Below, one piece after another: positions 977 through 63,211 of a stretch of 64,000 nt of DNA. Below the pieces are notes generated by a model, which saw nothing but the letters and a program-made list of their open reading frames with translations, ran no database searches and was not told where the DNA came from. A program made the position numbers and the translations under genes. This stretch comes from Lepidodermella squamata (Eukaryota; Animalia; Gastrotricha), in assembly GCA_047495785.1 (NCBI GenBank), contig JBLDXI010000054.1:1116001-1180000 (forward strand), in the 5' to 3' direction. Each line of letters starts with the position of its first letter. The first letter of the stretch is position 1.

Positions 977-3286
977 ATGTTTAAAATCCTAATATTCTCA
1001 TCAGTTATTACTGCTTGCATCCTTGGAGGAACAAGTAAGCCTTTCAAGGTGCAACTCTTAACTTTCATTCCTTTCACCGGGAACGCCCCTTTTGATGGGT
1101 CTGTCTGCAGAGCTGCGATGCAAGTTGCAGTTGATGCATCTAATTCAAACTCCAGCATTTTGCCTGACATCGAAATCGATCCACTTTATCTGGATGAAGG
1201 TCCCCTTTCTCTGGGCATAGCTACGGCATTGATTCAACATCTGAGAGAATCTAAAAAAGATCCCACTTCTTTCACAGCACCTGTTGCATTGGGTTCCTAC
1301 TTCAGCCCAGGTTGCCAAAGGGCAGGTCCAATCCTCCACCACCTAGGCTTTGTATTCGAGGCGATAGGATGCGGTGCTAATGATTTGACAAACCGTCGAG
1401 ATCGTTATCCTAATGTTTATCGCACCAGAGCTCCTGGGCAAAATCTTGTCCACGCTAAGATTGCCGCTTTCAAACGTTTTTCAAACTGGACAAAGTTCGC
1501 ATCGATCGCTTACTCGGAGAACAATTTCGACGTTAGCAACGCTAGGCTTCTGCTTGATATCTCGAAGGCCGTTGGCTTGAATATAGCTTGGTTTGACCTG
1601 GTTTCAGTTATTACCGACGAAACTATCGAGTCTTTGAAAAGTAGCAATGCTAGAGTGATTATTGTAGACTCAGGAGTGATTGAATTCACGACTTCATTCT
1701 ACTGCAAGGCCCATCAATTCGGAATCACCGGGCCTAGATTTGTATTCATAGCCAACTTGTATTCATTCATCGATTTGAAATCAGGCGAACTTGAGAAAGG
1801 CCTGCCTCGTGGCTGTACAAGGCGAATGCTACTGGAGCAATACAAAATTTCAATGTGGTTCGGCAGTTTCCTGAGCCCAGATGTAAATTACGGGAAAACG
1901 GCACTGGGCTATGATTTACACGATTTCGAGGTTCGATTGGATGCTTTAACCAACAGTTCCCGAGTTCCCGATTATCGATCCAGATTCTACTGCCACGATG
2001 CTATGTTAACCTCGATTTTAGTTCTAGATAGGGCTGAAAAACTTCTGAGATCCGATAACAAATCCCTTTCTCAATTCAATGGAGCACCAGGCGACGTAAT
2101 GCATGCTGTTAACACCAGTGCTGCAAGTATTGATATCATAACGTTGCGAGTTGGCCGAAGTTTCCTTTCAAAGCGAGCTGAGCCGGATTACGAGCCTCTT
2201 TATATGGGAATAACTGATCGGAATGAACCAAAATTAGTGTACAAAGTTACAGCCGCTTATAATTCGAATGTTGAAGACTATTCCTCTTACGTTTTTGATG
2301 GTCCTATCAATTTGACTTGGCCTGGATCCTCAAATAGATTGCTGCCTCGAGATTCCTGGTTGGTTAATACATTTGAAATTCAACTTTCTTTCCAGTACTG
2401 TTTGATTGTGTTCACTCTGGCATCTTTGGCTTCTCTTGTGAAGATAATCATCATAGGACGTCTTCTCAGCCGAATATTTCTCCGAAAGTCTGACCTCAAA
2501 TCTCAGACTTTCAGACTACTTATGAATATCTCAGGATTAAGCGTAGACATATCGGCTGTGCTTTATGCTCTGAGTTCATCTGATTTGAAAGGAATGCATG
2601 TTTGCGTGGCGAGATTATCATCCTTAAGCATGGGACTATCTCTAATGCTTGGCGCAATCATCGAGAAATCCCTAGAGCTGAATAGGAGGGCGAAATCGTT
2701 TGCTTTGCTCCGAGCCTCTGTTACAAGTATAAGGCTAAGATCTTCAAGCTTAATTTCTGATATTTCGACAAGGAAGAAACTGTCTACGAACATATTCGAA
2801 GCACTTGAAAACAGAATTTCAGCAATTTTCGTCATTAGCAACGTTTTAATCGTTATCGCATGGCTTCGCTTTGAACAGCATGGTTTCTTGAAAGTTGATT
2901 TTGAGCCTTATTACGATTCGAAAAAAGACATAATGAATTATCAATTTGGATGGATTTGCGAGTCGCATTACCATAAGAAATGGATATTTTCAATATGGTC
3001 AATGCACATTTTCGGACTGGCTTTTGCGGGCTATAAACTGTATGGCCTACGATATCACACGCGATTCAGGCAGATGAGAATTAAGAATAGGGCGATAATT
3101 GTAAATTGTTTCGTGAGTCTGCTTGCTTCAGCTCTGATTCTCTTGCTTATGCAAGATTACTACAACCAAACAGCTTACATTTCCTTTGCTGGACTTTTCA
3201 TATCGACTTCTACGTGCTTGATTGAAACCGCTGGAAAAGTGAGAATCTCCTGTTTACCTTCAACGCTATGTAACAGTCGGAAGTAA
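977..3286 (+). CDS. Class C GPCR, GABA-B-receptor-like (Venus flytrap domain + 7TM), intronless, 769 aa
   Basis: Signal peptide; ANF-receptor-type motifs (AMQVAVDASNSNSSILP, RDRYPNVYRT, FYCKAHQFGITGPRFVFI); hydrophobic TM region from about aa 470 including an ECL2 WICES cysteine. Confidence 0.8.
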   Translation: MFKILIFSSVITACILGGTSKPFKVQLLTFIPFTGNAPFDGSVCRAAMQVAVDASNSNSSILPDIEIDPLYLDEGPLSLGIATALIQHLRESKKDPTSFTAPVALGSYFSPGCQRAGPILHHLGFVFEAIGCGANDLTNRRDRYPNVYRTRAPGQNLVHAKIAAFKRFSNWTKFASIAYSENNFDVSNARLLLDISKAVGLNIAWFDLVSVITDETIESLKSSNARVIIVDSGVIEFTTSFYCKAHQFGITGPRFVFIANLYSFIDLKSGELEKGLPRGCTRRMLLEQYKISMWFGSFLSPDVNYGKTALGYDLHDFEVRLDALTNSSRVPDYRSRFYCHDAMLTSILVLDRAEKLLRSDNKSLSQFNGAPGDVMHAVNTSAASIDIITLRVGRSFLSKRAEPDYEPLYMGITDRNEPKLVYKVTAAYNSNVEDYSSYVFDGPINLTWPGSSNRLLPRDSWLVNTFEIQLSFQYCLIVFTLASLASLVKIIIIGRLLSRIFLRKSDLKSQTFRLLMNISGLSVDISAVLYALSSSDLKGMHVCVARLSSLSMGLSLMLGAIIEKSLELNRRAKSFALLRASVTSIRLRSSSLISDISTRKKLSTNIFEALENRISAIFVISNVLIVIAWLRFEQHGFLKVDFEPYYDSKKDIMNYQFGWICESHYHKKWIFSIWSMHIFGLAFAGYKLYGLRYHTRFRQMRIKNRAIIVNCFVSLLASALILLLMQDYYNQTAYISFAGLFISTSTCLIETAGKVRISCLPSTLCNSRK

Positions 3287-49977: not shown

Positions 49978-51094
49978 GCCGAAAAAAGAAGGTTAGGTTA
50001 AATTGACAGGATACAAAATTGTATTTCACAGCTTATAATGCCTAATAAATAAATCGACCCTCACGATAAAATGTCTGAAGAATATTAGGTATTGCGTGCT
50101 GAGGCTCGATAATTAAGAGTTGCCACTTGCGCTCCTGAAAAGATTATCGATCGGTCATGAAGTAAGAGAGGTAAATTATACTTTTTGCCAATGAAACTTT
50201 CATTCAGCTCAACTGCACTAACGCATACATTTAGCGCTGATGAATTAGGCATTTAGGAATACTACACAGCGTGTTTTAGGGTGAGGAGCGCCCGTGAGCA
50301 GCTGTTCCCACATTATAAGAAAAACAAAGCGTAGTAATTACGCTGTTTTGCGCCCATGTCTGTATTTTTTGGTATTTTTCAATGCGCTGGATTACGCTAA
50401 TTACCCCTGCGCAATGGCTCGGTGTGTTGGCTCCTTTTGCTCTACGAGCGATCAACATGGAAATAAAAAGCACCTGTGTAAAATGCATAATATGTGGGCC
50501 ACAGAATATCAAAAGATAACTTAATTTCTCTGGCCTAATTTTCTCTTCAAAGATGAATTTACCTTTTGGGGAAGGACCTATGGAGTGTTCCATACGTAAC
50601 ACAAACAAATAAAATTCGGGATAAAGGAATCAGAAATTATAAAATGAGAAAAATCACTGAATGGTCTGAAATGCAATGAGAATACCATTCAGGTAGATTT
50701 CTTGTGAGTAGGATTCAAAAAAAATCCAAGAAATTTGATAAAACCAGGTAAAAACCGAAAATTACCGAACCAGTTACCATCGGGGATTACAGGGTTTTCT
50801 CTAGTAAGTTTTTAACGTCTTCTCCTGAAATATAGTGAATGAAGGATGGAAGATGTTCTCGGCGGGCTAAATTTCAAAAAATTAGTTTAATTTCTTCGAA
50901 ATTTTGCAAAATTTCAAATTGGTTGCGCAATTCAAGGGACTCGCTTTATCAACAATTTCGCTACACACAAGATGAGTGGAATGTTTACATCCAAGCGAGA
51001 AGCTAACTCTTGACACGCCAGCGCATTTCAAGTGTTTTGCGCAACTAGTTTTCGCAACTCCAAAAAAGCAGCAGCATAAATTTGAAGCTACAAC

Positions 51095-51362
51095 ATGTTT
51101 TCCTCTACTCTGTCGTTGGTAATTCTCTCGCTGATTGCTCCGCTATCAATTTTCAAAAATGCTGGGATATCACCAGGTAATCTTGAACTGCCAGCTGTGA
51201 GATCTCAAGTCAAGAAATTTCGTTCTAGTTGAAGGAGGCGAAACAGTTTACAATTTCGAGAAGCAGCGAACAGCGGACCTCGGCGTGGCCATCGCAATTA
51301 TTGTGACCTTACTCCTTGTAATGATAGCTGTCATCTTGATATTCATTTTTGTGAGATGTTAG
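51095..51362 (+). CDS. Single-pass membrane microprotein 1 (divergent member)
   Basis: MFSSTLSLVILSLIAPLSIFKNAGISP/VEGGETVYNFEKQRTADLGVAIAIIVTLLLVMIAVILIFIFVRC*; phase-1 intron. Confidence 0.65.
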
Positions 51363-51448
51363 AAAAATACGACCATCGAACAATAAAATTATTTTACTCA
51401 AAATGTCAGCCATCACAGAAAATTATTGCGATTGTCATACAGTTAACT

Positions 51449-52207
51449 TCACAATTCGTAATGATCTGTTATAACGTCACTTACTTCACCTAACGTTTCT
51501 TCATCACCGATTTGCCACTGGTATAAATCGACGGCCGTAAGTCCTGCTTTCGACTTGACGTCTTTCAAACCTTCGTAATTCTCCATCAAATACCTCACAA
51601 TAGCATCTTGACCGGAAAGAGCGGCATGGTGGAGAGCTGTCATGCCGTCCTGGTCGACTGAAAACGGATTCGCTTGTTTCACCTTGTTTGTTAACAAGTA
51701 TTTCACAATGGCTAAGTGACCGTCCTTTGCAGCCAGCAGTAATGGAGTCCTTTCTAGCCCATCTCTCGCTTCGATCAACTCGTCGTACTGCCGAAGTAAC
51801 AGCTTCACCGAGCCTAGAGATCCTATCCCAGAGCATGCGGCATGAATTGCCATGAACTTGGTTTCAGAGCCGATTTCTCGGGCGAAAATATCGGCACCCA
51901 AGTTCCGGATTAAAAATGCAACAACGCTTGGGTAATCTCGAGTTGCCGCCTCGATCAAAATGGTAGTTTTGACTGCTCCAACTCCAGTCACGAATTTGAT
52001 AAGCGTTGCATCTGCTAATCGTTTCAAGACCGAGCATCGTGGTGTCAACGTTTTCTCTGGGTCGAAGTGGCGTTCGAATTCAAAGCGGAACCGCTCTACG
52101 ATAGCCTTGAGCCTCGATAGGCTGCCAGATTCGACGGACAAGAGCAATTGCATTCCATAGTCTGCCGTCTGAGGGAAAATTCTAGAAATTTCTGAACTGC
52201 AGCTCAA
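51449..52207 (-). CDS. Ankyrin-repeat protein (last exon; upstream exons probably extend to ~52560)
   Basis: RTPLLLAAKDGHLAIVKYLL, GMTALHHAALSGQDAIVRYLM, GLTAVDL. Confidence 0.85.
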   Translation of the reverse strand: MSCSSEISRIFPQTADYGMQLLLSVESGSLSRLKAIVERFRFEFERHFDPEKTLTPRCSVLKRLADATLIKFVTGVGAVKTTILIEAATRDYPSVVAFLIRNLGADIFAREIGSETKFMAIHAACSGIGSLGSVKLLLRQYDELIEARDGLERTPLLLAAKDGHLAIVKYLLTNKVKQANPFSVDQDGMTALHHAALSGQDAIVRYLMENYEGLKDVKSKAGLTAVDLYQWQIGDEETLGEVSDVITDHYEL

Positions 52208-53216
52208 ATTGTGTTACCTGCTGAATGAGGTAATCCGCTTCGGACTTGATTTGGGATTTCCATTTAGAAAAATTAGCACTGTTCGCATTGAGATCAGAAT
52301 TCTTGAGGCTTAATTCATATGCATCATCCTTAAAAGGCAGGATATGAAACAATTTTCCTGAAAATTTAGTTTACTTACAAATAGCTGAAATTCTTCAGAG
52401 CAGTCTACGGCGAAATCGAGCTTTAGAGATAGTTAACGGAAAAAATTCAGTATTACCTTCCATTGGGTCGGAAACCATAGGAAATTCGCCCATAAGTTCG
52501 AATGACGAAGTGGACCATGCAGCAGCAACAATAATCACAGAGAATATTGTCCACAGCATCTTTCAAATTGTCACGAGCCTCGAGTCAAGCCATTCCCTCG
52601 TTTCTTTCTTGCAATTATTAGCCTATTTATCTGAATATAGGCTCTTAAGATGCTCCCCCGCTTTTACTATACGATAAAGAATTAGTACTGACCAGTGAAA
52701 TTATAGTAGTAGCCACGCGTGAGTGGAAAAAATGGGCGTTGGCTAGGCAGTAGTGTTGTTATTATACTCAGTTTTCTTTCACGAGTGCTGTGGCCGCATG
52801 TAGTTTAGTATTATAGAAGCCGCAAGTGCCTTTTTATTGATTAAGCTGGCCACAGCAGTGCGGTCGACTTACGCGCATGTTTTTCCACCTGCCACTCTTT
52901 TATGAAACGGCTTTTGTTTACATTCTTAGATACTATACTGCGGCATCAACGCAATGACAAAAGCGCTTTGTTCGTAAAGTCAACTTGTTACAATAAAGAC
53001 GCTCCGCTCTTTTTGCAAGCGTCTCAGTGTTACATCAATTAACTCCGAAAAAAACGCGTTTTGCAAAATTCTGTCAATTTATTTACATCAATTTGGATAC
53101 AAATTTGAAATTGAAGCCTTCCATGCAATAAATTATGTACAATCTCCATTCATAACCGCATAAAATTCAGCAAATCTGTGCGAGAGGTGTTGTGATAGGT
53201 GCAAAATCTCCAGCCG

Positions 53217-53510
53217 TCAGCATTTTAAGACCCCGAGAGCGCATAGCAGTATGAAAACCAGCAGAAGGATGAAGGTCATAACGCCGAGAACAATCCCAGT
53301 AATTATCAAGGCTTCATCTGTGCCGATCGTCCCAGAAGAAGACTGCGTCTGAGATTGCGCTTCTGTAAACAAATTCCCGATTCATCGACCATTTTTGGGG
53401 TAAAAGTAATTACCGGCTAATTTAGGCGATTGGTGATCGAGGAGACTCAACGGCGAGAGGATAAATACGCTTACCAGCCACCATTTGTGATGTAACCGTG
53501 CTAAACCCAT
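53217..53510 (-). CDS. Single-pass membrane microprotein 2
   Basis: MGLARLHHKWWLVSVFILSPLSLLDHQSPKLA/EAQSQTQSSSGTIGTDEALIITGIVLGVMTFILLLVFILLCALGVLKC*. Confidence 0.72.
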
Positions 53511-53713
53511 TGCCAACAAGTGCGAAGTGATCAAGTGCTTAATTGTGTATAAAAATCCCCTATAATTCGAGGATTGCGTGCGAATCAAATAACGTAAATC
53601 GAACAAAACAAATAACTAAAAAGTGATTGCGATCGAGAGGTATTAGAGTCTGCGATGAGACTTGATGGCCGTTGTTGCTGTCCAAGATTGAGGTTGAGTG
53701 ATTATTTGAGCAT

Positions 53714-54311
53714 TTAGCAGCATTTAACTGCGCCTATCGCTAGCAGGAGGAGTAGGACGAGGAGAAGGATGAATGACATGCTGCCGAGGATTATGCCGAC
53801 CATGACGCCTGCACTGTCGTATGAGATGAACTCTTCACGGTTAAGAGGAGGATGTGGAGCAGCATCTGAGGTTAAGGTTAAGAACATCAACTTGCGTTTA
53901 ATAACCAACAAAGGTTCTTGCAATGATGATTGGGGGCGCGATCCCTAAGGTTAATTTTCAATTTCAATTTCGAATTCAATTTCAATTCCTTCGGCTCTAA
54001 ATTTCTGATTAATTAAGGAATTTTTCTCAATCAGGGAAAATTCGAAAGAAATTTCTTTCTTGCAAACTAAGTGCGGCACTTTTTTCCTAATAATGCGAAG
54101 TATTGAAAGTTTTATGGAATATTTTCAGCCCGATGAGGATTGTTCAAGGTCGAATAGTTCTTTCGATTTTATGTTTAGCGCAATGTTGCCAAGCAAGGCT
54201 CACTTTACCTGTGAATGACGATTGCCAGCATAATAGGAATGACGATATGATGAGCAGCGTAAATAGCCTGATTATTAGGCTGTTACTGAATATTACGGGG
54301 CTAGGCAGCAT
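53714..54311 (-). CDS. Single-pass membrane microprotein 3
   Basis: MLPSPVIFSNSLIIRLFTLLIISSFLLCWQSSFT/DAAPHPPLNREEFISYDSAGVMVGIILGSMSFILLLVLLLLLAIGAVKCC*. Confidence 0.75.
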
Positions 54312-54441
54312 GATTTCTAGATGTTAAAAGAGTTAATTTCCTATTATGGTTAAAACGTTACATATAAGCAATAGGTAAAATTGGTTAGATTCCGGTTAAA
54401 GGTTGAGAGGTTAATAGCAACTAACAAATAAATGTAGCCAA

Positions 54442-54719
54442 TCAGCAACATTTTATTGCGCCGATAGCTACTAAGAGGATGTAAACGAGAACGAGGATGA
54501 AACACATGCTGCCTAGAATGATGCCAACCACTGCCCCAGCTGCGTCCGTTGTGATGAATTCCTCCCTAACGAGAACTGGCTGCGGAGCACATTCTGAAAA
54601 ATATTCAATTTAAAATTTCGAACTGGAGTCGATATAAACGAACCAGCCAGTTTCATGATAAAGGGCGCCAGAGCAAGGAGCCTTGATAACATGAAATTAG
54701 CTCTTAATATCACTTCCAT
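54442..54719 (-). CDS. Single-pass membrane microprotein 4
   Basis: MEVILRANFMLSRLLALAPFIMKLA/ECAPQPVLVREEFITTDAAGAVVGIILGSMCFILVLVYILLVAIGAIKCC*. Confidence 0.72.
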
Positions 54720-54818
54720 CCTTAATAACCGAAAATATTGTCTAAATTATAGAAATAAACGAAATTTTTTGCAAATTGTTGAAGTCTCGGGCAGTTTTGA
54801 AATTAAGCCAGAGATATC

Positions 54819-55056
54819 AAGACCATTTGAGGACTCCGAGAAGGCATTCAAGAGTAAAAACTAAACTAAAGTGAAGATCATGCATCCGAGCACCCTGCCA
54901 ACCAGAAATCCAGCTCCACAGTAATCATAGCGGTCCTGGCGGGAAAAATTATTCTAAAATCTATTTACATTTCAAGTATACCTGAAAGAGCCGCCTAACA
55001 GACACAAATAATTGCACTTCGTCGCAGAAATGTTCGAATCCAATCTTTGTTCCCAT
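54819..55056 (-). pseudogene. Decayed microprotein-family copy
   Basis: DYCGAGFLVGRVLGCMIFTLV* then frameshifted LLGVLKWS*; broken signal exon. Confidence 0.55.
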
Positions 55057-55157
55057 AGTAAAACTCCTATAAATTCCTAAAATTAGAAATATGGCGTAAA
55101 ATTGATGATTTTAATGAGCATTATTCATTGAGCATTCGATCCATTCAAGAGCAGTTT

Positions 55158-55455
55158 TCAAGATACAGCGGTGCAGCATTTGAGTTGGCCTAGAGAGTTC
55201 AGTAAAATCAAAACCATCGCCGCTATAACTGTCATTACAAGAAGTGTCCAGCCAACTATCGCGCCAGCACTATCTAGTTGAATGTATTTCTCACTGTTGA
55301 TAGGAGGCCCTTGCTGGGCAGCTAAATATGAAAATCGAATGAAAAAAACGGCGGAAAAAGTATTGAGCAGTACTTATCGGGTTTTGCGCATTCGAGACTT
55401 CGGTAAACAATAACAATAATGACAGCAGGGTTACGACCTCCGAAACACGTTCCAT
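55158..55455 (-). CDS. Single-pass membrane microprotein 5
   Basis: MERVSEVVTLLSLLLLFTEVSNAQNPI/TAQQGPPINSEKYIQLDSAGAIVGWTLLVMTVIAAMVLILLNSLGQLKCCTAVS*. Confidence 0.72.
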
Positions 55456-56610
55456 AAAACAAATAAATATCTACAAAACTATTGAAAAGCGTGAAAACAA
55501 ACATATTTTTCGCATCAAGCTGAGTGGGCGATCGTATTTTCGCTTCATAATGAGGTATCAATGACAAACAAAAGCATAGAAACAATAGTTGACAGTTGGC
55601 ACCTGGAAGGGTTCACGTTACTAATTGCTGCTGCTGCGTTTTTTAATGCCCCACTCGAGTCGTAGAAGTGTCGAAAAGTTTCATCAACACCGGTCGTGCC
55701 AAGTTGCAGCTGATAAATAACACATTATCATAGCGTAATTAAGACGAAGCCGCGCTCATGCATGAGCATTGCTAGTTAACAAGCCGGCGATTAATTACTC
55801 AAGTATAATACCCATCAATGACAGGCGAGGCGTCAATAAAAAACTGGCAATTAGTATTAATTTTAGGAAAATCCGTAAAATTCCGGCTAGCCAAGAAAAA
55901 AATCCAAAAATTATATATTATGATTTCAGCTATCAGCAATCGCGATAGAAAAATTAAAAAAATAGTGGCTTTAGGCCATAAAATTCGGAGCACAGAACTT
56001 GTTTCGCAACTTTCCTCAGGTGTCAAGGCTGTGTAATGCTCGAGTGCAAAAAGCGCGCAGGCGATTAATGTAGCTAAGATCCCAGAGATACGTTAAATTG
56101 TTTTTTAACCCTCTCACTCCGTTCCCAAAATGACGGCACACCATGGCGCTTATTATTTTGCTTTTATTTATTACAAAACATGGCAATTATCGCCATTTCC
56201 GCTGCTGGAATATACTTTTCTATTAACTCACCAAGTTTACAGTGTTTCTCTGTTTGTCAATAGAGAAAGAGCAACAATGCAGTGTGTCACTTACAGCTTG
56301 CCCGCTGTTAAGAAGGCAAAACACTTGAATTTGTTCACTATTCCTCACGTTTTTGTCTCTGAGAGTGGAAAATTACTTCAAGAATCGCAAAACAGATTTT
56401 CCGGTTTTCGGGTAGACTTTATTTTATAGCCGCGCTGTTTTCGGAATGGAAAAATATCTAAGATTTATGATTCACTGCTTTTTAATGATGCATATGCTAT
56501 AAAAATTAATCTAAATTAATCGGAGAAATAAATATTCATCAGTATTTCGAGTATTTTGATTATGCTGAGCAATCCATTCTTCTTGTTGTTGGTTTGATTT
56601 TCAAGTTGGG

Positions 56611-57638
56611 CTATTTGCATTTTATGACACCTGCAGTTGCCAGGACAATGATTACGACGATGAAGAGGAAGGCCATAACGCCGAGAACGATGCCGATTAT
56701 TACCCCTGCGCCGCTGTAGTCTACCGATGTGACGATTATCGTTGTCGTATCGCCTCGAACTGGGTACAAAAATATTTATAAAAAATGAAAGCAATGTGAT
56801 TCTGAACAGCCGGGTCTAGAAAAATTATTCCAAGGTGGGATATATTGATAAATGGGCTTCTTATAAAGCTTAGCCTATCGAATAAGCCTGAATGCGCCTA
56901 GTTTTGGGGCAAATGAAGATTTTCTTAGAAAATGTTGGGAATTGCTTTGCAGTTGCTGTGGTCACCTCAATTTGAGGGGGCTTTTTGTAACGCATCAGAC
57001 CGTAGAAGTCTAATAGGGATCGTCTCCTATTGATTTTCGAGGTGGACTTCATATCTTTAGGCAAGCATAGTCCTTAACTTTCATTTGTTGAAAAGATTCA
57101 ACCGCAGCGAAAGAGTTTCTAAATTCTCAACCTTGATAGCTATTATGCAACCTTTCAAGTGGACGGAAAATCCCTAAGGAATTTTCTCCCGACAGAGAGC
57201 GAAGTAGGACAGCAGAACTGGTAAGGATAAGGGAAATCGGCATAAGGCTCCCCTAACTGATCGAGCTGACAGTTCAGATTGATTGAACTGGTATGGATTG
57301 TCCCAACCATCTATACCGGCACTTCGCTGTCTCCTTCCCAAATCGTGGATAAGTCTTGGGAAATTTGATACTCGGATCTTCGTGGTACATGAAAACCCGA
57401 GAAAGATACTCCAGCTATTCTAACACTGATACACAAAGCTATCGATCATAGAATGCTTATCGGGCAAAGGACAAACATGAAGGAGATTCTTTAGGACTTG
57501 TCTTCAGCCGTTGATAGTATTAGAATAGTCTAATTTACCTTCATTAAATAGCGCAAGTGGAGATATGACAAGAAGCGATAAGAGTAGGACATTGAGCTGA
57601 CTTGCCAACACCTTTTGTAACGCAGATCGCCGCATCAT
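56611..57638 (-). CDS. Single-pass membrane microprotein 6 (long intron containing a MITE)
   Basis: MMRRSALQKVLASQLNVLLLSLLVISPLALFNE/VRGDTTTIIVTSVDYSGAGVIIGIVLGVMAFLFIVVIIVLATAGVIKCK*; exon 1 assignment inferred from phase and similarity. Confidence 0.68.
57192..57333. mobile_element. Degenerate hAT-type MITE, copy of 37543-37679
   Basis: cagagagcgaagtaggacagcagaactggtaaggata...gaactggtatggatt...cacttcgctgtct. Confidence 0.7.
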
Positions 57639-58897
57639 GACTGAAATGGCAAATTAACAGGCCGTCGCACTACAAAGGAAGAAAAATTGATAACGCAAAT
57701 TTGATGATGAAGATGTAATTCAATATTTACACATGTTCTATTCTATGAAGATGCCAAAAACCGACAACAATTAGTCGACGTGTTACACGAAGTTGTAGAA
57801 GCCAGCGCGGCCGTTGGCGATGATAATTGAGCCGATGGCTGCTAAGTGCTCATTGTCTCTGACACATGTAACAACAATGGGATTTGCGCATAAACAAATA
57901 ACACACGACAGCCGCAGCAGAAGCACGAGCGCCGCGTTAACGTTGTAATTATTGAAAAGTTGCCGAAACAATTGCGCCGTATAATTTGTTTTTCGACTAT
58001 TTCGGCTATTTTTTTGAGCTGATTGCAACTTGTTAAACATGAAAACATGCTTAGATTAGCGTGTAAGATGGTGTTTATCTTAATAATGAGATAAGATTTA
58101 CAAATTTCCACGCATGGCAAAGGTTTTGCATCCCAGCGGCGACGTGACTACTATTCCCCTTGTCGAATGCGCTTGATCCATTTGCGGTAACGGCTGTCGG
58201 CTATCGGCTGTTATTTTTAATTCACATCCTGTTTGCTCGCGCAGCCAATGTTATACCTACTCAGACATTTGAAACTTCAATGGATTTGCCATAGTTTTAC
58301 TGTAAATGTTCTCGAAATTGTTCTTTCTTGCCCTGTGTGATGCATTTATCGCGCTTTTCAAGGGCATAATCAATGATTATGACATAATGGAACAGTTTCA
58401 TCCTAACTGATTGCCCTCCAGTTTTTTTATTTCTGTTTATTTCATTTCGTTTTTGAAAAATGAAAAAATGCTGAAACTCTCTTCTTTTACTGATTGCGAA
58501 GATGGTCTGTTTTTTTTCAAGAAATAACATGCCCAATGGTCTGACTTCGGTCTGACTTAGGATCGACTAACGTTGGTCCTCCTCCGACACTCAATATGGT
58601 TGGAGGAACATTATCATCCTTCAGCCATACTGGGTACACCGGAGTGACTTTTATTCCGTTATCTGTACAGGTTTTTTGTCTTTTTGTTCTAAAATCTTGG
58701 TTTTTTGAGGAAATAAAGAAGATGTTATGTTGTGTTATGTTATGTTATGTTAACATGCCCAACATGAATAAATTCAACCAGCTCAGATGCTTAAATATCT
58801 AACCCATCTCAGGCTAAAATTCTTAGTTCATCATTAACGATTTTCGAAATTCGTTCCTTATTCAAAGATGCTTGCACGATCATTAACGGTGTTTTTA

Positions 58898-59241
58898 CAT
58901 TGTGGAACCACTCAAAAGTCAAATTCCAATGCGCATGCTGATTGGTCAATCGATCGTTGCTATGACTCCCGGATGAAACATTATGGTCGTGCGATCCATA
59001 AGATTTTTTGCAACAAGTGTTTTTTGCCGCAGTCATGTCATTTTCCACAATTATTATGGGGTTTACGCTCGTGGTCAATGGAAACCGTGCAGAGGGTGTG
59101 GCAAGGTCATTTTTTACATAAATAAAAAATAATTTATTAGTGGATCGCACGACGGAAATGTTTAATCCCGGGGTCATAGCAACGATCAAATGACCAATGA
59201 GCGTGCGCGTCAAAGTTCAACTTTTTAGTGGTTCCACAATG
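58898..59241. mobile_element. MITE with long imperfect TIRs (CATTGTG...CACAATG), related to 7889-8189
   Basis: cattgtggaaccact...gctgattggtca...tcgtgcgatcca mirrored at the right end. Confidence 0.8.
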
Positions 59242-60212
59242 CAATTGAAATTTGAGAAAAAGCTTCGCATTGCGGTTTCATTCACCTCAGTTCACTTCCC
59301 CACATATTCGATTCGCACAAATTCAGTAAATTTTGTTGTTTCGAGAACGTTTCAGCCGTGAAAAAGTAGACCCTAGCTAGATCTAAATTTGACACTGGGA
59401 TAGATAGAATGCGTTCGATCCTACGTAGATCTTACGGTCAAATGAGACCTGCGCACCATCGGTGCCCATCGATTTTGTTTATTATATCGACAATAGGTCA
59501 CTAAATGCTAAAGCACTAATTTTGGACGAATATTTCGCCTTTTCATACTGATGCACTATCTACGGAGCTCTGAGGTCTACTGATTACCGCCTAGGGCTTG
59601 AAGCCTGGAAAACTGGAAGAAAATTTGAAGCCTGGAAAACAAAGGCAATGTTCGACCATCGAAATCATGCCATTAAGTCATCATAATAATCATGAATAAT
59701 CATAATTTTGAATTAAGCTCATTTGATCAACCTTCTCCAAATGACTGATAGGATTTAACGTAATTTGAATTCATACTGTTTTTCGCACGCAAAAGATGGT
59801 ATGTGAGCGGCAGTTGCTGACGAGCGAAACGTGCCGGCAGTCAGTGCCGTCTAAAACTGTCAAAAACTGGTCAAACGGTGAATAACTGGACGGCAGCAAA
59901 TGATATGCGGCTCGTTTCAACAATTAGCCGCTGCGCTCTCATCGTGGATGAAACGCGTATTGTTTTCATCGTCAAAGTGAATCCGCTACCAGTGGCAGTC
60001 ATCAACACCTCGCAAGTCATTATCATTGCTCAATTCATCACTCGAAAAACACAGTGCTCTTAGGTAAACAAATCTCTTGTCAAAAAATTCCTGAAAATTT
60101 CTTTTGTTTCAAAATCTCCAAATTTTACATCAACCCTTGTTTCATCGCTATTTTTCGATAATTGACAAGTGTTATTCATTTTTTTCGAATGTAGGTGAAA
60201 GAATTTGTCGCA

Positions 60213-60504
60213 ATGGGCTTTCCCAACTCATTTGTTCTACTGTCAGTTGTCGCGCTTTCGCCTTTCACCTGCTCAGCGGCTCCGCTTCAGTCGAACAGTG
60301 AGTTTGATATTCTGGGGAATTTTTGATTACTTAATCATTTCATGTGATTTAGAGCCTCTGCCACCTCTCAATGGCGATAACTACATTCATCACGAAGAAG
60401 CTGGCATTCTGGTGCTGGTCATCCTCGGCATGATGTGCTTCATTCTATTGCTTGTGTATTTGCTTCTATTGGCAGTCGGCGTCATCAAATGTGGCTCGAC
60501 TTGA
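60213..60504 (+). CDS. Single-pass membrane microprotein 7
   Basis: MGFPNSFVLLSVVALSPFTCSAAPLQSN/KPLPPLNGDNYIHHEEAGILVLVILGMMCFILLLVYLLLLAVGVIKCGST*. Confidence 0.75.
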
Positions 60505-60896
60505 AACTTATTGGCCTATTAGTTAATTGCTCACTCGCCTCTATCCAACCATGCTCATGCGATCTATGAAGAAATAAATATTCCCTGAATTAACCTTTCT
60601 GCCATCAGCTTGATCAACCATTTTGGTAGATTCTTTAGAACTGAAATTCTTGCCTTTTCCACGCAGATTCGACGAAACGTCTTGGAAAGCTTAATTCAAT
60701 GACGGAGAATCCTTTTGTAACAGATGTGCCAAAAATCTCCAGGTTTCCGGCTCTTCAAATAGATAACGTATCTTGGATGGAATGACCTTGCCAAGACTAA
60801 AGATAAGGCTTGATTAGCAATCTTTCAAGATAAGAGAGGTAGCGTATAACTAGTTTCTACTTACTCTATCCTTTTCATGACAGGAGCCTGTAAAGC

Positions 60897-63211
60897 ATGA
60901 TCTACAGAATCTTTTTTATAGCCCTATTTGCCAGGGTCAGCGTAGAAAGCAGATCTCTTGATTCAGAATTCTTCTCACCTAGTGGTCAGTATAACCAGCT
61001 CCTTCGGCCTAATCTCAACCTCAACCAACTGGAATCGGATATCGAGAGGCTCTCAAATTTCAAATGGGATTTTTCAATCCTTCGAAGAGCTGGCGAAACA
61101 GCCCCCACTGCAGCAACCTGTTTGCGAGACTTGGGTAGAATTTTTGCGTCGAATGATACCTGGGCGAAAACATGTAATAAAACTTTTTAATTTGTACTTC
61201 TATCGTTTACGCAATTTCGTTTTTAGATCAGGACTCCTGGGCTAAGCCTGCATCTGGAGTTAGGAAGGGTAACATCAAATGGTACGGCGAATTCGATCAA
61301 TGCCTTGAGATACCAACAGTCGAATTACCTGGCCTGAAGAAAATCATTTTCGATCCCAAATTTTGCAGGATCGGCCTTGCCTCAGTTAATAGTCGCGGCC
61401 CCAATGCCTCACAGGGTATTACTCAGTCTTTTCCTGCCCCGATGCTCGGAATATGCGTCCCAAATAGCTGCAATGAAGCGACTCTTGTTGAGGTTATGAA
61501 CCCTTTGCTAGCCGCTGCTGGTTTCAAAGTCGCGGAAGGCCTAACTTACTGCCCAGTTCCTAGGCCAGAATTCACGACCTATGCAATTGTATCAATGTAA
61601 GTCTGAAAAATGTTGAACCTCCATGAATGATCTATCACTGTTCCAGAATTATTTTGGCAGCGGTTGGTGTGCTTACTCTAACCGGCCTTTGCGTAGATAT
61701 TTGCCTTAGGCGCAGATATTCGAAGAAGAAGAAGCAAATGACAGACATAGAGAAGGCCAAGATGAAGAGACCCCGTGAGCTTCTTACCAAGGAAGAAAAA
61801 ATGACAATCAAAGGCCATTTCGCCGACATTCTTTGCTGCTTCTCGCCTATTGCAAACCTAGGGAAACTTCTGTCAGTGCCTTCGATTGAAGAATCTTACA
61901 AAAGACCTAATCTGACTGTCCTGAACGCGATTCGAACGATCAGTGTGTTATGGATTATTCTCGGCCACATGTACTTCTTCATGCTGTCGGCTTTCGACAA
62001 CATATTGGATGTTGCTGATCTGAGAGGCCATGTCAGCTTCCAATTCGTTATCGGAGCTTTATATTCGGTGGATTCTTTCCTTTTCCTGGGTGGTTTTCTG
62101 GCTTATTGGGGCCTGTCTCGCAGATTGAAAACCCTTAAGTTCAATTTTTTCCTGTCTATACCCATGATATACTTCCATCGACTGGTGAGGATCCTGCCGC
62201 CTTATATCGCAATAATTTTGCTCGACCTTGGTCTTTGGCCTTATATTTCAAATGGGCCGTTCTACTTTCAAGGCGTAGACCAATTTTGCGCGGATAATTG
62301 GTGGACGAACCTTCTGTTTGTCAATAACTTCATCGATCCTTACCGAATGTGTGCCAACTGGACGTGGTACCTTGCTGTGGATATGCAATTGTTCCTGTTA
62401 GCTCCTTTTGTGATTTATGTCCTCGTTAAATGGCCGAAATGGGGCTGGGCTATCTGTTTAGTTGCCCTGATAGCACAATTCATTCACAATTTTGTGATCA
62501 CTATGGAATATGAATTGTCCACCGCCCATTATCTTGTCCCTAAAGGGTATCTTGAAATGGCTGCTAATGGGTAAGTTATTTTCATGAAAAAATTCTGAAT
62601 AAACTTTTGAATTTTGATTTTTTTACAGGACTAATACGAAAGATTACGTACTTTATTTCGATTACATTTACACAAAACCATGGGCTCGTCTGGGCCCTTA
62701 TGTAATTGGAATCCTTACCTGCCACATTTTGGTGGCCCATCATGATTTCCTCATGGAAAAAATCTTCAAAAAGGCACACATCCGTCTACCGATTTCACTT
62801 TTATCACTTATTCTGATAGTTGTCCTACTGTATGCCCAGTTTGGCGTTTATGCCGGGCGACGGATCGACCCTACCTGGGTTGATGCCCTCTACAACGCTT
62901 TTGCAAAAACTGTTTGGGGCATCGCACTGGGTTGGATCATCATTGCTGGATCGCTGAATCGGCTGGGAATTTACGGGAAGTTCTTCTCGTGGCCCATGTG
63001 GGCGATTCCGGCGAGATTGTCCTATTCAGCTTACCTAATGCATCCGTTTGTTTACCTGTACTTCGTTCAGACGAGTCGGAGGCCGTTTCACGTTACGGAT
63101 GCAACGACATCATTTCACTTTACTGGCGTTGCAGTTACGACATTTATGGTTGCCACGACGTTCTCGTTGATTTTCGAGTCGCCTCTTGTCGGTCTCATGC
63201 GATATTTCTAA
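60897..63211 (+). CDS. NRF-6/O-acyltransferase-like protein (NRF domain + acyltransferase-3), multi-exon
   Basis: Signal peptide; DSWAKPASGVRKGNIKWYGEFDQCL, GICVPNSC; LNAIRTISVLWIILGH, SVDSFLFLGGFL, WTWYLAVDMQLF, YTKPWARLGPY, ARLSYSAYLMHP. Confidence 0.92.

Follow-up and report, generated by a model that had tools for sequence, protein, structure and literature searches.

A row of short hydrophobic reading frames in the genome of the gastrotrich Lepidodermella squamata raised the question of whether they are separate genes of one family, and what kind of protein such a family would encode. The locus lies in a window of 64,000 nucleotides (contig JBLDXI010000054.1, positions 1,116,001 to 1,180,000), within which all positions are given. 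The cluster is probably a lineage-restricted tandem family made up of six active genes (M2-M7) and one pseudogene, with products that are type I single-pass membrane microproteins. An initial annotation had listed seven members and one decayed copy, and all eight loci were found where it had placed them:

51095-51362, plus strand: M1, 71 codons; exon 1 51095-51176, intron 51177-51228 (52 nt), exon 2 51229-51362; product ends in V-R-C.
53217-53510, minus strand: M2, 80 codons; exon 1 53414-53510, intron 53363-53413 (51 nt), exon 2 53217-53362 including the stop; Ser/Thr-rich ectodomain, C-terminal end L-K-C (HMM E 1e-24).
53714-54311, minus strand: M3, 84 codons; exon 1 54209-54311, intron 53866-54208 (343 nt, containing a low-complexity repeat), exon 2 53714-53865; G-x3-G-x3-G in the helix, C-terminal end V-K-C-C (HMM E 9e-29).
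54442-54719, minus strand: M4, 75 codons; exon 1 54644-54719, intron 54594-54643 (50 nt), exon 2 54442-54593; ectodomain opening with an additional Cys, C-terminal end I-K-C-C (HMM E 1e-27).
54861-55056, minus strand: decayed copy; exon-2 remnant 54864-54935, upstream ATG frame 54985-55056.
55158-55455, minus strand: M5, 81 codons; exon 1 55374-55455, intron 55322-55373 (52 nt), exon 2 55158-55321; end L-K-C-C plus five residues (HMM E 2e-26).
56611-57638, minus strand: M6, 82 codons; exon 1 57539-57638, intron 56760-57538 (779 nt, containing a high-copy repeat at about 57173-57371), exon 2 56611-56759; Thr-rich ectodomain, C-terminal end I-K-C-K (HMM E 4e-23).
60213-60504, plus strand: M7, 78 codons; exon 1 60213-60297, intron 60298-60352 (55 nt), exon 2 60353-60504; C-terminal end I-K-C-G-S-T (HMM E 3e-26).

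M2-M7 displayed a common architecture in which an ATG exon with a hydrophobic, signal-peptide-like core is followed by a GT..AG intron and a second exon, giving products of 75-84 codons (about 80 residues). The introns measure 50, 51, 52, 55, 343 and 779 nt and all are in phase 1. Exon 2 encodes an ectodomain of 15-20 residues, a helix of 29 residues with the pattern A-G-x3-G-x3-G ... G-x-x-K-C, and a nearly tailless end (2-8 residues after the helix). A hydrophobic core was found in all first exons and all second exons, and AlphaFold2 modelled exon 2 as a single helix (residues 9-48, core pLDDT 96-97). The exon-2 products align over 48-49 columns, eight of which are unchanged across the six members (A18, L26, M29, V36, L40, G44, K47, C48).

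Against the 2002 stop-to-stop frames of the window, a six-member profile returned each of M2-M7 at E 1e-23 to 1e-28 and the decayed copy at E 2e-4. In the whole 121-Mb genome no further copies were found outside the cluster by the family profile search, the next best match (E 0.2) coming from an unrelated receptor of the EGF type, at its helix. A conserved block common to the upstream regions of the members and DNA repeats shared between paralogs were both looked for, and neither was found. The decayed copy reaches a stop after 24 codons, within the helix, and also carries an Arg there; its upstream ATG frame (54985-55056) is without a hydrophobic core, and the first exon chosen would imply a phase-0 intron, compared to phase 1 in M2-M7. 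M1 shares the gene architecture of M2-M7, yet displayed no significant sequence similarity to them: it reached only E 0.22 against a profile built without it and a probability of 5% against the family by hhalign, and a search for an M1 paralog elsewhere in the genome found none. The seven members first counted are therefore six, with the decayed copy as a pseudogene, and M1 appears to be a neighbour built along the same lines, whose kinship to M2-M7 is not confirmed by the sequence comparisons.

Expression was read from a public RNA-like run (X1) over the region of M2-M6 and the decayed copy, alongside a DNA run (X2). We infer that X1 is RNA: its depth falls to zero over spacers and introns at which X2 reads about 100x. 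Five GT..AG joints of 49-52 nt were present in X1, among them the M4 intron and, exactly, the M2 intron (53362|53414, 51 nt skipped, with CT..AC ends corresponding to GT..AG on the minus strand), and X1 contigs at M2 span 53121-53587. The M4 joint (54595->54646) skips 50 nt, and its 2-nt offset from the GT..AG model is accounted for by one synonymous base change (GCT/GCA, Ala). At M3, both exons have X1 cover, as does the 3'UTR to about 53598; depth is 0 in 53989-54187, the sole bin that is wholly intronic. The strand-switch joint 53863/54313 shows the customary gap, about 100 nt, only with the 343-nt intron removed. At M6 a contig (56489-56758) ends at the acceptor, the 5' part of exon 1 is covered, the intron bins are 0 except over the repeat, and the 779-nt intron must be removed to bring the gap at the joint 56758/57642 to about 105 nt. 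Nine strand-switch joints in all display gaps of 84-114 nt only after the predicted M3, M4 and M6 introns are taken out. The M3 and M6 introns are thus backed indirectly, by cover and gap arithmetic. M5 had weak X1 cover on exon 2 only (depth 2.5) with no junction among the listed joints, and over 54785-54983, at the decayed copy, X1 depth was 0. M2-M7 are real genes, and M2-M6 are transcribed exon by exon. As regards the two-exon phase-1 models of the initial annotation, the M2 junction was confirmed exactly and that of M4 bar one synonymous base, while the junctions of M3, M5 and M6 were not seen directly.

The same data bear on another reading, with a single larger gene that uses these exons as its alternative ends, or with frames open merely by chance, and we consider this highly improbable. 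Between M4 and M2 there is almost no break in X1 cover, and the spacers from stop to next ATG are only 102-204 nt, as a single gene might give. Against this, each member has its own ATG exon with matching donor and acceptor, and the listed X1 joints each connect the two exons of a single member, with none between exons of different members, in agreement with the original reading as separate genes. Chance frames are excluded by the combination of saturated synonymous sites and a conserved protein. Conservation was judged from paralogs within one genome and from two haplotype differences. Between paralogs pS was 0.54-0.84 (about 0.7, saturated), compared to a pN of 0.13-0.51 in the helix. The two differences listed between haplotypes in the coding part of M5 (55293 and 55320) both read as synonymous, and three more lie in its intron. 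These comparisons indicate that the duplicates are old and that the helix is under purifying selection, as had been suggested at the outset.

Within the helix the six invariant positions (A18, L26, M29, V36, L40 and G44) fall on one face, in an arc of 80 degrees (p about 0.001 by random draws, in a post hoc test); the overall helical moment of conservation was not significant (p 0.14). Beside this face runs a glycine-zipper motif (G19-x3-G23-x3-G27). It is complete in M3, M4 and M6; in M2, M5 and M7 two of its Gly remain, and each of the three is missing from one member. A homodimer prediction for M3 exon 2 scored 0.04, which counts neither for nor against self-association. This conservation also bears on whether the products are GPI-anchored mini-peptides, with a D/S-A-G omega site and a C-terminal hydrophobic run that is cut off to leave some 20 residues anchored by a lipid. 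Such processing would suit a signal-like N-terminal exon, a hydrophobic and nearly tailless C-terminus and the small-residue triplet just before it. The hydrophobic run, however, follows directly on A-G with no polar spacer by eye and is 29 residues long. No other part of the protein is as well conserved: its invariant positions share one face, and the terminal K-C is likewise unchanged in every member. GPI signals that are cleaved off usually show little conservation, and we regard GPI anchoring as improbable here.

Exon 1 would, on the preferred reading of a type I membrane protein, encode a cleaved signal peptide. By eye, M5 (V-S-N-A|Q) and M7 (C-S-A|A) carry classical small-x-small cleavage sites, which argues against a two-helix hairpin in which the uncleaved exon-1 stretch is a first membrane helix and both ends are cytosolic. 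A clear site of this type was absent from M2, M3 and M4, and their hydrophobic cores of 13-15 residues or longer would be compatible with such a hairpin. Exon-1 sequences are, however, unconserved between paralogs, while the helix of the second exon is conserved, and the phase-1 intron sits right after the exon-1 hydrophobic stretch, a placement typical of signal-peptide exons. A hairpin is accordingly quite unlikely.

The ectodomain is the variable part of exon 2, with a pN of 0.35-0.79 compared to the helix range given above. Four members share P-x-P-P..(F/Y)-I-x-x-D/E in this segment and two are Ser/Thr-rich. Variation of this kind is found in many fast-evolving secreted peptides and, together with the P-x-P-P...(F/Y)-I motif common to four members, would fit membrane-tethered precursors that shed their short, active ectodomain as a peptide for signalling or defence. 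Conservation peaks instead in the helix and the terminal K-C, and no dibasic or other processing site was seen in the members, so that we judge shedding of a peptide to be very improbable.

The type I reading predicts a mature protein of about 50-55 residues, with a short outside stretch, the long 29-residue helix and, in the cytosol, Lys-Cys(-Cys) only. The positive-inside rule, packing through small-x3-small motifs, acylation of juxtamembrane Cys and the longer helices of plasma-membrane proteins are all established. By these precedents the invariant Lys would fix the topology, the invariant juxtamembrane Cys48, after Lys47 at the cytosolic helix end, would be a likely S-acylation site, and the long helix would suggest the plasma membrane. 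The helix most likely packs laterally against another membrane helix, either of its own copies or of a larger partner protein. Because of the invariant one-face residues, the glycine zipper and the Lys-Cys end, we propose that the family may serve an accessory or organising function as a small subunit; on the motifs, such an auxiliary role is plausible, and so are palmitoylation and packing of the helix. A bolder version is that the proteins form a class of accessory subunits not yet described, acylated and built on a glycine zipper, with each paralog tuning or trafficking a channel, pump or receptor, and hence an independent functional counterpart of FXYD and KCNE; we put this forward as speculative and rather unlikely in that full form. 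Small single-helix proteins are routinely overlooked by gene finders, yet those described so far (FXYD, KCNE, regulins) exert strong control over pumps and channels. The six gene models, with their conserved helix face and invariant Lys-Cys end, make up a tractable set of microproteins from a neglected animal lineage.

Searches for relatives were performed at several levels. A Pfam scan with all seven exon-2 products returned helix-only sub-threshold noise (Glycophorin_A, Syndecan, SKG6 and the like). A word-indexed search of 5.8 billion proteins with a seven-row alignment gave nothing at E 0.01, a metagenome scan with a three-row alignment gave no relative, and an exhaustive HMMER search of 1.84 billion protein representatives with a six-row profile likewise gave no relative. 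The lone HMMER match (E 6e-4) covered 19 positions of a repetitive protein of 3119 residues and was taken as chance. The only match in a PDB profile search was a bacterial signal peptidase helix (E 0.67), and a literature search on motif words gave no match. In the ESM Atlas, generic small single-pass clusters (SMIM3, SMAGP, PRIMA1, stannin) appeared at 0.75-0.85 and serve as leads only. The family thus seems to match no described family, in line with the initial annotation, and the blank is weak support for this, given a short, hydrophobic profile and the possible omission of records from this genome and its nearest kin.

In build the family resembles FXYD proteins (phospholemman and kin, regulators of Na,K-ATPase; PF02038): these too are small, of type I and single-pass, and have a short ectodomain, small residues conserved in the helix, and basic residues and Cys right after the membrane. 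The juxtamembrane Cys of FXYD proteins is palmitoylated. With E values up to 10 admitted, none of the seven exon-2 products matched PF02038 and the PDB profile search returned no solved FXYD chain. The F-x-Y-D signature is missing from all members, alignment columns 12-16 being (F/Y/S/T)-I/V-x-x-(D/E/S); M3 reads F-I-S-Y-D, and other members can be likened to (F/Y)-I-x-x-D/E. In the family the acidic residue adjoins the helix, compared to about seven residues before the helix in FXYD, and the family differs further in being almost without a cytoplasmic tail. KCNE (ISK_Channel) gave no Pfam or PDB match and was rejected, the family tail being 2-8 residues compared to tens in KCNE.

Regulins (phospholamban, sarcolipin and sarcolamban, regulators of SERCA) are, like the family, single-helix membrane microproteins, and act purely by one helix packing against a pump. 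They are tail-anchored, without a signal peptide, with a cytosolic N-terminus and a single coding exon, whereas the family begins with a signal-like exon and is oriented the other way round; no regulin sequence match was obtained in the Pfam or PDB profile searches. The initial annotation had likened the family to FXYD, KCNE and regulins in concept while matching it to none, and this distinction held, by sequence tests for the first two and by topology for regulins.

Syndecan (PF01034) was rejected at 7.7-12 bits against a cut-off of 25.2, with matches to the helix only and no tail in the family for the C1/C2 regions. Glycophorin A (PF01102) was also rejected, its best match being 14.2 bits (E 0.05, helix only) and its scores 11-14 against a cut-off of 30.1. 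The family is without a glycophorin ectodomain or tail, and its resemblance to glycophorin A and glycine-zipper helices lies in a G-x3-G-type motif, in the full zipper form in M3, M4 and M6, which marks a class of helix rather than a family.

The window consists of animal DNA (contig C54 of a genome of 121 Mb in 151 contigs) with a G+C content of approximately 42% and introns near 50 nt. Reading 50800-60800 in all frames, followed by placement of splice sites, resulted in eight loci: six two-exon microprotein genes (M2 to M7), a neighbouring gene of like build (M1) and a decayed copy.

Features of the window (M2 to M7 by frame reading and splice-site placement)
977-3286, ANF_receptor-domain open frame of 769 codons
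5982-9306, VIT + VWA protein
51095-51362 (+), M1
51449-52675 (-), ankyrin-repeat gene between M1 and M2 (Pfam Ank_2, E 6e-22)
53217-53510 (-), M2
53714-54311 (-), M3
54442-54719 (-), M4
54861-55056 (-), decayed copy
55158-55455 (-), M5
56611-57638 (-), M6
57173-57371, high-copy repeat within the M6 intron
58895-59244, inverted repeat between M6 and M7
60213-60504 (+), M7
61627-62574, Acyl_transf_3 membrane acyltransferase directly downstream of M7

The two-exon build with a phase 1 intron described in the initial annotation was present in all six of M2 to M7. Exon 1 (25-34 codons) starts with ATG and has a hydrophobic core, the intron is GT..AG and exon 2 has 47-53 codons. Intron length was 50-55 nt in four genes, 343 nt in M3 and 779 nt in M6, where the intron is made longer by a repeat. 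Run over the 2002 open frames of the window, a six-member profile recovered each of M2 to M7 with E between 1e-23 and 1e-28. A search of the whole genome, in line with the genome searches proposed in that annotation, gave no further copy. The next-best genome match (L008) was rejected as a family member, being part of an EGF-type receptor. The decayed copy matched the profile at E 2e-4 and is a pseudogene: a stop follows 24 codons, the helix contains an Arg, a signal-like exon is missing and X1, an RNA-like public sequencing run, gives no cover. M1 has the same build and ends in V-R-C, but scored only E 0.22 against a profile made without it (hhalign probability 5%), with no paralog found in the genome, and is counted as a neighbour of like architecture whose membership is not shown. 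This leaves an array of six genes and one pseudogene, compared to the seven plus one decayed originally claimed.

Neither a DNA repeat nor an upstream block common to the paralogs was found. Synonymous sites between paralogs were saturated (pS 0.62-0.82), with pN of 0.13-0.51 in the helix compared to 0.35-0.79 in the ectodomain. These values agree with the purifying selection proposed earlier and indicate that M2 to M7 are old duplicates, kept by selection on the protein and on the helix above all.

Reads were mapped over 51800-57750, a region that takes in M2 through M6 together with the greater part of the ankyrin gene; M1 and M7 lie outside it. The type of X1 is given as 'RNA?', a tentative label. 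X1 contigs lay on exons, with zero depth in spacers and introns where the DNA run X2 has approximately 100x, and five joints skipped 49-52 nt, four of them bounded by GT..AG on the minus strand, of which three are in the ankyrin gene. X1 behaves as RNA. One joint (53362 to 53414) matches the M2 intron prediction to the base. Another (54595 to 54646) takes out 50 nt at M4 with non-canonical ends, 2 nt off the GT..AG model. A single base separates the two placements and turns GCT into GCA, another Ala codon, and the offset is therefore attributed to a synonymous variant in X1. X1 covered both exons of M3 and M6 and nothing in their introns except the M6 repeat, with no plain junction for either gene among the X1 joints. 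Cover of M5 was weak and confined to exon 2. The introns claimed in the initial annotation were thus found in RNA exactly for M2 and, bar one synonymous base, for M4, while M3 and M6 are supported indirectly by cover and joint gaps. That the exons are alternative ends of one larger gene, the refuting case named there, gained no support from the X1 joints.

X1 also contained nine 'opposite strands' joints within 52457-57642. Gaps at the six without an intervening intron were 84, 86, 98, 94, 94 and 113 nt. The three over the introns of M3, M4 and M6 had genome gaps of 450, 164 and 884 nt, which became 107, 114 and 105 nt with the predicted intron removed, placing all nine at 84-114 nt in mRNA coordinates. 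These joints are probably a fixed-gap library artefact formed on spliced molecules, possibly from mates joined head to head or from snap-back cDNA, and they indirectly support the M3, M4 and M6 introns. At three of the nine (52457, 53863, 56758) an exon boundary is 0-2 nt away, a coincidence that the artefact reading leaves unexplained.

X1 cover ran almost unbroken across M4 exon 2, M3 and M2 (53100-54720), with a 10-nt hole at 53588-53597, over a stretch where stop-to-next-ATG spacers are just 102-204 nt. One joint extends the M3 transcript sequence to 54395, 47 nt off the M4 stop. Overlapping UTRs or a polycistronic transcript could account for this cover.

The six exon-2 products aligned without internal gaps. 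Columns 1-17 are variable and are followed by A18-G-x3-G-x3-G, invariant L26, M29, V36, L40 and G44, and a closing K47-C48 with 0-6 further residues. AlphaFold2, given exon 2 and the six-row alignment, predicted a single helix over residues 9-48 (core pLDDT 96-97) that includes a hydrophobic run of 29 residues (A18-V46). On an ideal helix, an arc of 80 degrees holds all six of the invariant helix positions, as it does for approximately 0.1% of random six-sets in a post hoc test; the overall conservation moment of the helix was not significant (p 0.14). A glycine zipper (G19, G23, G27) adjoins the invariant face, each Gly being replaced in one member. Outside the membrane, M3, M4, M5 and M7 have P-x-P-(P/V)-(L/I)..(F/Y)-I-x-x-(D/E) in common and M2 and M6 are Ser/Thr-rich. 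An R-G-D opening the M6 ectodomain (56750-56757) and an additional Cys where the M4 ectodomain begins (54589-54591) are absent from the paralogs and may be chance.

Hydrophobicity peaks occurred in exon 1 and exon 2 of every member, and cleavage-like sites are classical in M5 (V-S-N-A|Q) and M7 (C-S-A|A) and less clear in the others. By general rules the signal peptide would most likely be cut off, leaving 50-55 residues; in a less likely reading, a first helix left uncleaved would give a hairpin protein. The cleaved product would be a type I membrane protein with just Lys-Cys(-Cys) in the cytosol, the Lys setting topology and the Cys a likely acylation site, and the long helix would point to the plasma membrane. 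GPI anchoring would take this helix as its signal, but a polar spacer is absent and the would-be signal is the best conserved part of the protein. Another less likely reading has the ectodomain shed as a peptide. In the main reading, the conserved face would pack on another helix, either its own copy or a partner's, and the role would most plausibly be helix-mediated association in the membrane.

Searches were run with exon 1 and exon 2 sequences not joined. Pfam returned helix noise only, all below threshold, and chains of FXYD, KCNE, regulin, glycophorin or syndecan type were not among the matches when the profile was run against all sequences in the PDB. No relative was found among 5.8 billion proteins (word search), 1.84 billion representatives (full HMMER) or in a metagenome scan, in keeping with the lack of a known match noted at first, and the ESM Atlas gave generic small single-pass clusters with scores below a useful level. 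For a 48-position hydrophobic profile, distant kin are out of reach in libraries this large. Because these libraries may omit records of this genome and its nearest kin, the blank searches mean 'no described family' and not 'no orthologues'. Overall, six type I microproteins (M2 to M7) together with one pseudogene make up a family that is real, expressed, under selection and undescribed.

Elsewhere in the window, the 769-codon ANF_receptor frame had no relative at E 1e-10 in its sole search, a word-indexed protein search. The M6-intron repeat reached an X2 depth of approximately 1100, compared to approximately 100 on either side; loose ends are numerous at 57192-57244, and X1 covers the repeat too. 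The inverted repeat (104-nt arms, 82% complementary, 142 nt apart) looks like a small non-autonomous transposon. In the ankyrin gene, X1 confirmed short introns at 52169-52217, 52328-52377 and 52405-52456, the last two leaving a 27-nt micro-exon (52378-52404) between them. Its exon 1 (ATG at 52559) opens with a signal-peptide-like hydrophobic stretch, a start that is unusual in ankyrin-repeat proteins. X2 resolved two haplotypes of about equal depth over 51800-52730, with differences that in the ankyrin exons fall for the most part on each third position (51842, 51845, 51848, 51857, 51863, 51869 and onward); the M2-M3 stretch (53121-54057) was a single contig with no haplotype differences.
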